A stretch of DNA of 64,000 bases. It comes from Macrostomum lignano. Taxonomy: Eukaryota. Where the stretch lies: contig NIVC01001054.1 of NCBI GenBank assembly GCA_002269645.1, positions 208,744-272,743 of the forward strand. The letters are read 5' to 3'. Each line of letters opens with the position of its first letter. Positions within the stretch are counted from its first letter, which is position 1. The notes under the pieces were generated by a model. That model worked only from the letters and a program-made list of their open reading frames with translations, had not been told where the DNA came from and did not search any database. The position numbers and the translations under genes were made by a program. This document shows positions 48,598 to 51,348 of this stretch, in pieces.

Positions 48598-51348
48598 ATG
48601 CAGCGCTTCAAGGATGCCCTGTCCCGAGTGCCCGTGGTGCCGGTTATCAAGCTGTATGGCAAGATCGCTGCCCCCACCAGCGGCTACAGCCGGGGGGTGA
48701 TCAACTACCAGAGTGTGAAACCCCTGTTGGCCAAGGCCTTCAAGCAGAGACGGCTGGCGGCTCTGGCTCTGAGGATTAACAGCCCAGGTGGCTGGCCTGT
48801 GAGTGACAGCTGCTGATTCTCAGGTGTGACCACTGCCTCACCTCCCCGATTCTCAGGTGTAACCACTGCCCCACCTTATTCTCAAGTGTGACCACTGCCC
48901 CACCTCCCCGGGTGTGACCACTGCCCCGGCTCCCCGATTCTCAGGTGTGACCACTGCCCGACCTCCCCGGGTGTGACCACTGCCCCACCTCCCCGATTCT
49001 CAGGTGTGACCACTGCCCCACCTTATTCTCAAGTGTGATCACTGCCCCACCTTATTCTCAAGTGTGATCACTGCCCCACCTTATTCTCAAGTGTGATCAC
49101 TGCCCCACCTCCCCGGGTGTGACCACTGCCCCACCTCCCCGATTCTCAAGTGTGACCACTGCCCCACCTTATTCTCAAGTGTAACCACTGCCCCACCTTA
49201 TTCTCAAGTGTGATCACTGCCCCACCTTATTCTCAAGTGTGATCACTGCCCCACCTTATTCTCAAGTGTGATCACTGCCCCACCTGCCCGGGTGTGACCA
49301 CTGCCCCACCTCCCCGATTCTCAAGTGTTACCACTGCCCCACCTTATTCTCAAGTGTGATCACTGCCCCACCTCCCCGGGTGTGACCACTGCCCCACCTC
49401 CCCGATTCTCAAGTGTGACCACTGCCCCACCTTATTCTCAAGTGTGACCACTGCCCCACCTTATTCTCAAGTGTGACCACTGCCCCACCTTATTCTCAAG
49501 TGTGACCACTGCCCCACCTTATTCTCAAGTGTGATCACTGCCCCACCTTATTCTCAAGTGTGATCACTGCCCCACCTCCCCGATTCTCAGGTGTGACCAC
49601 TGCCCCACCTCCCCGACTCTCAGGTGTGACCACTGCCCCACCTCCCCGATTCTCAGGTGTGAGTGACACTGCCCCACCTCCCCGACTCTCAGGTGTGAGT
49701 GACACTGCCCCACCTCCCCGATTCTCAGGTGTGACCACTGCCCCACCTCCCCGACTCTCAGGTGTGACCACTGCCCACCTCCCCGATTCTCAGGTGTGAC
49801 CACTGCCCACCTCCCCGATTCTCAGGTGTGACCACCCCACCTCCCCGATTCTTAGTTGTGACCACTGGATATGTTAACTCCTAAATCACGATGCCTAATC
49901 CTCTCTCCCAGTGATTCAGTGTGGCTGCTAATTCCCTCCCTCAGAGGTGCAAACCACCCCTCGCTCCCGCAGGCGCAGTGCGACCTCATTCGCAACGAGA
50001 TCAACCGTCTGTCAGCAGAGCACGGCAACATTCCAGTGCTGGCTTTCATTGAGGACATGGCAGCCTCGGGAGGCTATTACCTGGCCTGCAGTGCCAGCGA
50101 AATCTATGCCAACAGGCACAGCCTCATTGGCTCCATCGGTGCCCTGGCGGTGCACGCTGACCTGCAGACAGCGCTGAAGGAGCGGGCCAGCCTGGCCCTG
50201 ACTCTGCACCGGGCGGGCAAGCGGAAGGCCATCTTTAATAATTTGGAGGCCGCCAGCCCCGAGTCGCTGAAGTTCACCAACTACATGCTGCAGGGCATTC
50301 ACGCCGGGTTCATTGACGTGAGATGCTCACGTGATCTGTCTGTCTGTCTGTCTGTCTGTCTGTCTGTCTGTCTGTCTGTCTGTCTGTCTGTCTGTCTGTC
50401 TGTCTGTCTGTCTGTCTGTCTGTGTGTCTGTCTGTCTGTTTGTCTGTCTGTCTGTCTGTTTGTCTGTCTGTGTGTCTGTCTGTCTGTCTGTCTCTGTCTG
50501 TCTGTCTGTCTGTCTGTCTGTCTGTCTGTCTGTCTCTGTCTCTGTCTGTCTGTCTGTCTGTCTGTCTCTGTCTCTGTCTGTCTGTCTGTCTGTCTGTCTG
50601 TCTGTCTGTCTGTCTGTGTGTCTGTCTGTCTGTCTGTCTGTCTGTCTGTCTGTCTGTCTGTCTGTCTGTCTGTCTGTCTGTCTGTCTGTCTGTCTGTGTG
50701 TCTGTCTGTCTGTCTGTCTGTCTGTCTGTCTGTCTGTCTGTCTGTCTGTCTGTCTGTCTGTCTGTCTGTCTGTCTGTCTGTCTGTCTGTCTGTCTGTCTG
50801 TCTGTCTGTCTCTGTCTCTGTCTGTCTGTCTGTCTGTCTGTCTCTGTCTCTGTCTGTCTGTCTGTCTGTCTGTCTGTCTGTCTGTCTGTCTGTCTGTGTG
50901 TCTGTCTGTCTGTCTGTCTGTCTGTCTGTCTGTCTGTCTGTCTGTGTGTCTGTCTGTCTGCCTGTCTGTCTGTCTGTCTGTCTGTCTCATCCAGATCCGC
51001 TCTGCTCAACCTCAGGTGGTGAAGTCATCCCGAGGCGACCGGCTCAAAGGCGCCCCGGAGTCCGAGCTATTCGAAGGCGACATCTGGCTGGCCGACAAGG
51101 CCCAGCAGCTCGGCCTCATCGACGGCGTCGGTGACCTCGAGGATGTGATCGCCAAGAAGTTCGGCCGCAGCGCCCGCCTGGTGGACATCGGGCCTCGGGG
51201 CTGGGCGAAGTTCGCCTCGGGTGCCGCTGGGGCCTGCGACATTCTCCAGGCTGCAGCCGCTGGAGGCCTCTGGTCCTCTGCGGCGGCCGGCGACCTCGCT
51301 GCTGGCGACGGCAGCGGCTTTCGGGGTGGACCGCCGCTGGCCGCGTGA
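48598..51348 (+). CDS. S49 family (SppA/SohB-like, short type) serine peptidase, 292 aa, 2 introns
   Basis: Exons 48598-48798, 49973-50317, 51016-51348 (879 nt, all phase 0). Motifs [42 protein letters not shown]...[30 protein letters not shown]....[10 protein letters not shown]. Confidence 0.92.
48815..49865. repeat. 29-36-bp minisatellite (S49 intron 1)
   Basis: Unit GTGTGACCACTGCCCCACCTCCCCGATTCTCAG (33 bp) with a ...CCTTATTCTCAAG variant. Confidence 0.95.
50334..50987. repeat. (GTCT)n microsatellite (S49 intron 2)
   Basis: ~650 bp of TCTG. Confidence 0.97.

Follow-up and report, generated by a model that had tools for sequence, protein, structure and literature searches.

A bacterial-type S49 peptidase gene in the nuclear genome of the flatworm Macrostomum lignano, probably gained by horizontal transfer

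The genome of the flatworm Macrostomum lignano contains a gene for a peptidase of the S49 family, to which bacterial SppA belongs. The gene lies on the forward strand at positions 48598-51348 of a 64,000-nucleotide stretch of contig NIVC01001054.1 (positions 208,744 to 272,743; assembly GCA_002269645.1), referred to here as the window. It is nuclear, integrated, intact and constrained, and it belongs to a mainly bacterial family. On balance, the M. lignano S49 gene was probably gained by horizontal transfer, followed by intron gain.

A complete S49 peptidase encoded by three exons

Frames assembled from the sequence give three exons and a spliced open reading frame (ORF) of 292 amino acids. 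The exon lengths of 201, 345 and 333 nt (stop included) place both introns in phase 0, and the splice sites are listed with the exon boundaries in Table 1. The sequence-only reading of this DNA had described two spliceosomal introns filled with repeats of the host type, and this description holds: intron 1 carries a 29-bp minisatellite and intron 2 a (TCTG)n microsatellite, whose tetranucleotide recurs in the window as (AGAC)n arrays at 3693-5058 and 40163-40752.

The same reading had identified a full short-form S49 protein with intact AASGGY serine, INSPGG and AGKRK lysine motifs, which is borne out by the profile match, the structural alignment and the conserved columns. The protein belongs to family S49 of MEROPS clan SK: its match to Pfam PF01343 (Peptidase_S49), over residues 85-229, scores 94 bits where the cut-off is 24.9 (E=1.2e-26). 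INSPGG occupies residues 60-65, MAASGGYY contains Ser99 and AGKRK contains Lys152. In a 54-sequence alignment, N61, S62, P63, G64, G65, S99 and K152 are invariant columns. The SppA entries 3bez, 3rst and 4kwb of the PDB match at E ~1e-17, with Ser99 and Lys152 aligned with the catalytic Ser and Lys. Lys152 aligns with Lys209 of the E. coli enzyme and with a position occupied by Ala in the chains from B. subtilis. We take 4KWB to be the K199A mutant of B. subtilis SppA, which fits with the Lys152-aligned position being that of the catalytic Lys199.

An AlphaFold2 model computed from the 54-sequence alignment has a mean predicted local distance difference test score (pLDDT) of 83.6 and a predicted template modelling score (pTM) of 0.78; pLDDT falls below 50 at residues 275-289. 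The best PDB matches of the model in Foldseek are B. subtilis SppA 3rst/4kwb (TM 0.80-0.83, E ~1e-19), followed by the 1510-N protease and ClpP. As judged from the model and the alignments, the protein keeps the SppA fold, the NSPGG motif and residues predicted to act as nucleophile (Ser99) and general base (Lys152). It is an S49 protein but no equivalog of SppA or SohB, as its NCBIfam scores lie under the curated cut-offs for TIGR00706 (117 vs 155), TIGR00705 (92 vs 311) and SohB (NF008745, 72 vs 259).

With 292 residues and a PVVxVxRLxGxI-type strand at residues 11-23, the protein falls within the 265-300 aa class of the short anchor-less subfamily. No hydrophobic segment, signal peptide, membrane anchor or obvious presequence was found in the 292-aa protein, and the product is therefore most likely cytosolic. 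The SppA of B. subtilis (3RST, 4KWB) and the SppA/protease IV of E. coli (3BEZ, 3BF0) share with it the positions of the Ser/Lys dyad, and the B. subtilis structures share its fold, at 22-25% identity in structural alignment. In contrast to the flatworm protein, SppA has a membrane anchor and a catalytic domain that lies outside the cytoplasm; the E. coli enzyme is a tandem-domain 67K form. By analogy, the flatworm product would assemble into an SppA-like ring in which active sites are formed by Ser and Lys of neighbouring subunits, and would cleave peptides or unfolded proteins.

Three syntenic copies evolve under purifying selection

GenBank protein PAA72887.1 (BOX15_Mlig016275g1) corresponds to this splice model with two additional 5'-partial residues, its coding sequence being 5'-partial and beginning at 48592. 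The 90% cluster that contains the two M. lignano UniProt proteins also includes PAA72887.1, PAA67107.1 and PAA87489.1, which are encoded on three contigs of GCA_002269645.1 and all match the splice model. Locus L001 is identical (100%) to the window exons, and the three contigs differ by 1-2%. BORCS6 lies upstream of the S49 gene in L001 and L002, and the pacifastin-like gene lies downstream in L001 and L003. All three ORFs are intact. The intron lengths (first/second) are 1174/698 nt in L001, 561/635 nt in L002 and 272/495 nt in L003. Since intron positions and splice sites are common to the three copies, the gene and its introns are older than the duplications.

The coding sequences of the copies vary at 13 sites, with nine synonymous and four non-synonymous changes. 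The ratio of non-synonymous to synonymous rates (omega) among them is 0.11-0.20 (P=0.0012 in a binomial test against neutrality); the three copies evolve under purifying selection. In the UniProt models A0A1I8JA66 (P0001) and A0A1I8HWY1 (P0002), an internal segment and a segment of the C-terminal tail are frameshifted. These frameshifts are not present in the three loci of the Mlig_3_7 assembly and are thus probably errors of the earlier assembly; Mlig_3_7 has better base accuracy than its predecessor (PMC5730564).

RNA-seq and transcriptome assemblies were the only sources of the GenBank annotation of M. lignano, and novel transcripts below 0.5 reads per kilobase per million (RPKM) were discarded (Wudarski et al. 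2017, PMC5730564), which provides indirect transcript support for the S49 splice model. GenBank and UniProt already list the S49 protein under automatically assigned names, and we found no paper discussing it. Upstream of the start codon, the sequence CTCGCACTC(C/T)GCAG|CAGTGAGATG is kept in all three copies, and the AG before the ATG is possibly a candidate spliced-leader (SL) trans-splice site or the 5' end of the mRNA.

The closest named relatives are bacterial

We searched 1.84 billion cluster representatives exhaustively with phmmer, which returned 30,716 proteins at E<=1e-3 and 164 at E<=1e-30. The two M. lignano UniProt proteins are the best database matches, and the sole cluster above 50% identity is that of M. 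lignano. The next match is 44% identical (E=1.8e-48), and no relative outside M. lignano exceeds 46% identity among these representatives. In a word-indexed search, the named matches among the best 120 were all bacterial apart from M. lignano itself. The bacterial names include Amycolatopsis, Allokutzneria, Sciscionella, Sulfitobacter, Defluviicoccus, Bradyrhizobium and Roseobacter, with close named matches in Alphaproteobacteria, Pseudonocardiaceae and plasmids, while profile searches describe a subfamily that is mainly alphaproteobacterial, Rickettsiales included. The bacterial relatives that we looked up sit in ordinary intronless bacterial gene neighbourhoods. No other animal, and no cnidarian protein in particular, was present among the named proteins of the best 120 matches, a set that did not involve a direct search of other flatworm genomes or transcriptomes. 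The alien index, a check proposed along with the first reading of the sequence, is at least ~33, with a best bacterial E value of 3.7e-50 compared with values worse than 7.9e-36 for any named animal other than Macrostomum.

The short 'S49 family peptidase' of Alphaproteobacteria and Pseudonocardiaceae is represented here by Amycolatopsis azurea P0004, Magnetospirillum aberrantis WP_163679103.1, Sulfitobacter P0046 and Parvibaculum P0329. These proteins resemble the flatworm protein in length (265-300 aa), in the absence of an anchor, and in the PVVxVxRLxG(V/K)I strand and the NSPGG, AASGGY and GxxK motifs, with 39-46% identity and E values down to 1e-50. They differ in that their genes are intronless and in that they retain DPF, ERR and WxR[FY]GL, whereas a ~20-aa Ala/Gly-rich extension occurs in the flatworm protein only. 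We know of no member of this short anchor-less subfamily with a tested function. The alphaproteobacterial likeness initially read from the two ends of the protein is supported at the N-terminal strand, and by the mainly alphaproteobacterial make-up of the subfamily, but the 'LW tail' aligns to WxR[FY]GL only through its Trp.

Homologues on plasmids and chromids at 38-42% identity amount to 2339 records, chiefly from conjugative plasmids of Klebsiella, Escherichia and Salmonella and also from Azospirillum and Tistrella chromids. The short S49 subfamily is mobile among bacteria. A phage prohead-protease ancestry was considered and is unlikely, since phage matches do not exceed 37% identity and reach E=3e-33 at best, much weaker than the chromosomal and plasmid matches.

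Homologues in other eukaryotes

Two profile searches for named eukaryotic homologues returned none, and their results were dominated by Alphaproteobacteria. Some homologues carry low-complexity inserts or N-terminal extensions, which comprise 30-110 extra residues in several cases. One group, E1, was at first guessed to be eukaryotic from its N-terminal extensions and its richness in Lys and Asn; in a profile search its named relatives were only Rickettsiales, namely Orientia, Trichorickettsia and metagenome-assembled genomes of Rickettsiaceae. Some of its members, such as P0149 with 47% GC, come from poly-A metatranscriptomes of Tara and may be eukaryotic. P0149 is a short S49 of Rickettsiales type (Tara Oceans ERR1719153, JGI 3300018960) that occurs in abundance on ~1-kb contigs of marine eukaryotic poly-A metatranscriptomes, and clusters related to it have up to 111 members. 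Sequences of this type may represent further transfers into marine eukaryotes.

A second group of homologues is eukaryotic in part. P0155 is an uninterrupted short S49 ORF on a 43.6-kb contig of 57-72% GC (ENA ERZ4198739 NODE_698), where it adjoins a G-patch gene and a homologue of RME-8/DNAJC13 (PF19432, E=8e-61, together with a DnaJ domain). The cluster of P0215 includes a EukProt protein. Protist nuclear genomes thus hold members of the subfamily, and these protist members are not in named databases. A mitochondrial SppA has been described in Andalucia godoyi and Acanthamoeba castellanii (Gray et al. 2020, PMC7050145). Compared by description only, these mitochondrial proteins resemble the flatworm case, as do P0155, P0020 and P0215, in being bacterial-type S49 proteins encoded by eukaryotic nuclear genes. 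P0155 differs in its uninterrupted ORF and some of the long homologues in their N-terminal extensions, at ~40% identity to the flatworm protein; the position of sister to the P0155 group is allowed.

In animals, an anthozoan 'peptidase S49' (A. digitifera_15871) is a published candidate for horizontal gene transfer (HGT) with the donor affinity 'Algae/Bact' (Bhattacharya et al. 2016, PMC4878875). By its description, this is likewise an S49 gene in an animal lineage that was read as horizontally acquired. A survey reports S49 in animals, in fungi and in stramenopiles, alveolates and Rhizaria (SAR) (PMC5567314), and the text of a metazoan HGT compendium makes no mention of Macrostomum or S49. 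The initial statement that S49 peptidases lie outside the standard animal gene set is therefore to be qualified: the closest named relatives of the flatworm protein are bacterial, but S49 had already been reported in animals, the anthozoan candidate included.

A long branch deep within the short S49 subfamily

In a neighbour-joining (NJ) tree of 282 sequences, the flatworm branch fell beside the SppA outgroups and other long branches. We took this position as long-branch attraction, and maximum likelihood (ML) placement was therefore used instead. The alignment comprised 125 sequences and 267 columns. With a reversible rate matrix derived from the Gonnet PAM250 log-odds, branch lengths were optimised on the NJ backbone under four gamma categories and the flatworm sequence was tried on every branch; the placements are those of a simple model on a backbone that has only the NJ topology. 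The pendant branch of the flatworm sequence measures ~0.75-0.8 substitutions per site, and the flatworm gene is a long branch deep inside the short anchor-less S49 subfamily. Placement with Actinobacteria, which provide the best BLAST matches, carries a log-likelihood deficit of -9.6, and placement with the Rickettsiales-type group one of -16.2. Both groups are disfavoured as donor.

Remodelling of the catalytic Lys arm and the C-terminal tail

Of the 75 columns in which at least 90% of 53 relatives agree, the flatworm protein keeps 53 and has changed 22, whereas the relatives keep 64-75 (median 74). The changes are concentrated in residues 124-161 (window 50150-50260), the arm that carries the catalytic Lys, where 11 of 13 conserved positions are changed compared with 10 of 61 elsewhere (Fisher P=4.8e-6). 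The only survivors in this arm are Gly149 and Lys152. Motif changes include DPF to NNL and RR to LT. At the C-terminus, WxR[FY]GL is reduced to its Trp within the tail LWSSAAAG, which is followed by the Ala/Gly-rich extension, a disordered stretch of ~20 residues.

The pattern of substitutions suggests that the remodelled Lys arm and tail altered substrate choice or regulation relative to the bacterial relatives. C-termini are seen bound in B. subtilis SppA, and the conserved tail of the bacterial proteins may likewise act as a plug of the active site or mimic a substrate; in the flatworm, the new disordered tail would take the place of that tail. A broader reading, to which we give rather little credence, is that the enzyme was re-engineered after acquisition into a lineage-specific Ser/Lys ring protease of the cytosol whose specificity or regulation is new, or else that it is the sole bilaterian survivor of an ancestral mitochondrial SppA.

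Horizontal transfer and competing explanations for the origin of the gene

Under the explanation that we favour, the S49 gene would have entered the Macrostomum lineage from a bacterium, or possibly from a protist, before the M. lignano genome duplications, and introns and host expression signals would have been gained after entry. Transfer followed by intron gain explains why close relatives are lacking in other named animals.

Several observations weigh against this explanation or loosen it. The likelihood weight is diffuse, with 0.53 on deep mixed branches, 0.27 on the protist-like group and 0.13 on Alphaproteobacteria. Resampling of estimated log likelihoods (RELL) is similarly spread, with 0.37 on Alphaproteobacteria, 0.25 on the protist-like group, 0.14 on long-branch taxa and 0.02 on Actinobacteria. 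The protist-like group, Alphaproteobacteria and the deep branches are indistinguishable by ML placement, so that no single donor is singled out. The nuclear protist homologues (P0155 and the P0215 cluster) and the reported mitochondrial SppA allow vertical descent with many losses. The number of changed conserved positions is large enough that catalysis may be altered or lost. Expression of the gene is indicated by the annotation, indirectly, from the way in which the annotation was built and not from reads, and the Macrostomum S49 gene identifiers were not found in the papers and supplements searched.

The main rival is patchy vertical retention, in which the gene descends from an SppA of alphaproteobacterial type carried by the ancestor of mitochondria, persisted in the lineage of Macrostomum as well as in some protists, and disappeared from almost every other animal. 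We regard it as unlikely, but it stays live beside transfer because protist nuclear homologues exist and the placement is diffuse. The mainly alphaproteobacterial nature of the subfamily with its Rickettsiales agrees with retention, as do the mitochondrial SppA of Andalucia and Acanthamoeba, the surveyed presence of S49 in animals, SAR and fungi, and the allowed placement beside the protist-like group with its likelihood weight ratio (LWR) and RELL share given above. The flatworm tail also keeps the Trp while lacking the Arg and the FGL end, like those of P0020 and P0155. However, this protist-adjacent position has no significant advantage over the others, and an N-terminal extension or presequence is missing from the flatworm protein, whereas several long homologues have their additional residues there. 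M. lignano is moreover the only named animal in the best 120 matches even though names are attached to UniRef proteins, the exhaustive search gave no other cluster above 46% identity, and retention requires that the gene was lost independently many times, both across Bilateria and among flatworms. Transfer and retention, the pair put forward in the sequence-only reading, are still the two live explanations, and the evidence favours transfer.

The gene could also be a decaying relic, a transferred or retained copy that is drifting and makes no active protease. The 22 changed positions, with the losses at DPF, RR and the C-terminal motif, would be expected of such a copy, as would the TIGR00706 and SohB scores under their cut-offs and the frameshifts in the UniProt models of the older assembly. 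These frameshifts, however, are probably assembly errors, as they do not occur in the Mlig_3_7 loci, and the improved assembly shows three intact ORFs with conserved splice sites. The low omega among the copies likewise disagrees with drift. Within the most remodelled segment Lys152 and Gly149 are the sole survivors of 13 positions, a pattern that points to selection on catalysis. We therefore consider a relic improbable. Bacterial contamination or a chimeric assembly, which the bacterial best named matches might suggest, is refuted, as the sequence-only reading had argued from the BORCS6 flank: the gene has ordinary animal neighbours on both flanks of the same contig (BORCS6, PF10157, upstream and pacifastin downstream), two spliceosomal introns of host repeat types and syntenic copies on three independent contigs that are 1-2% apart, and its identity to any bacterium is at most 46%.

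Genomic neighbourhood

The features of the locus and its nearest neighbours are collected in Table 1. Exons for RPL6e, a scramblase and an EF-hand protein further out in the window also provide an animal context. The GC content at third codon positions (GC3) of the S49 exons is 0.79-0.81, and that of the neighbouring genes ranges from 0.49 to 0.87.

Table 1. Features of the S49 locus and flanking genes, in window coordinates
Feature	Position	Strand	Description
BORCS6, last coding exon	45825..46154	+	PF10157, E=3.1e-32; 2.4 kb upstream of the S49 gene
Candidate acceptor AG	48589..48590	+	Pyrimidine-rich tract before AG; 7 nt upstream of ATG
Exon 1	48598..48798	+	Codons 1-67; start ATG, N-terminal beta-strand motif, NSPGG oxyanion-hole motif N61-G65 at 48778-48792
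Intron 1	48799..49972	+	Phase 0, GTGAGT...CCGCAG, 1174 nt, 29-bp minisatellite nearly throughout
Exon 2	49973..50317	+	Codons 68-182; Ser99 codon 50066-50068; Lys152 codon 50225-50227 in the Lys arm (remodelled residues 124-161)
Intron 2	50318..51015	+	Phase 0, GTGAGA...CCTCAG, 698 nt, (TCTG)n microsatellite
Exon 3	51016..51348	+	Codons 183-292 and TGA; C-terminal half of S49 domain, helix, disordered Ala/Gly-rich tail
Putative AATAAA polyadenylation signal	51518..51523	+	~170 nt past the stop codon; conserved in L001-L003
Secreted pacifastin-like protease inhibitor	54758..55093	+	PF05375, E=2.2e-7; 3.4 kb downstream of the S49 gene

Tandem repeats make up ~44% of the 64-kb window. Tandem Repeats Finder (TRF) reports 60 rows of overlapping arrays, chiefly minisatellites of 18-29 bp together with (AGAC)n, (TCTG)n and (AGTT)n. 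The arrays occupy most introns and intergenic spacers of the window, and their lengths vary strongly among the three homeologous copies. A second scramblase-like exon at 36260-36600 (+; PF03803, E=4e-27) lies 5 kb downstream of the first (31338-31832, +). Its frame is interrupted by a stop and a frameshift, which may mark a tandem duplicate turned pseudogene or an assembly indel. Three long ORFs of the window have no Pfam match (57909-58280, +; 39306-39833, -; 63281-63766, +), one of which is Cys-rich with a signal-like N-terminus.

Significance

Functional bacterial-type genes in animals that are well documented are uncommon, and each clean case helps to calibrate how often and by which route such genes are adopted. 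The steps are clearly visible in this one: the gene sits among ordinary genes, has gained two introns made of host repeats and uses codons much as the host does, and it has outlasted genome duplication and is under purifying selection. It is a further example and changes no concept, as thousands of metazoan HGT candidates have been listed and S49 has already been reported in anthozoans and protists; as a foreign gene probably taken up by an animal, it is a clean case, though one with precedents. Because M. lignano is a transgenic model, the location of the protein, the effect of its knock-down and its activity are testable. The remodelling around the catalytic Lys offers a specific hypothesis for how a bacterial protease may be retooled in a eukaryotic cell. 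If the re-engineering is true, this would be a rare instance in which an animal gave an envelope-type protease of bacteria an intracellular role.

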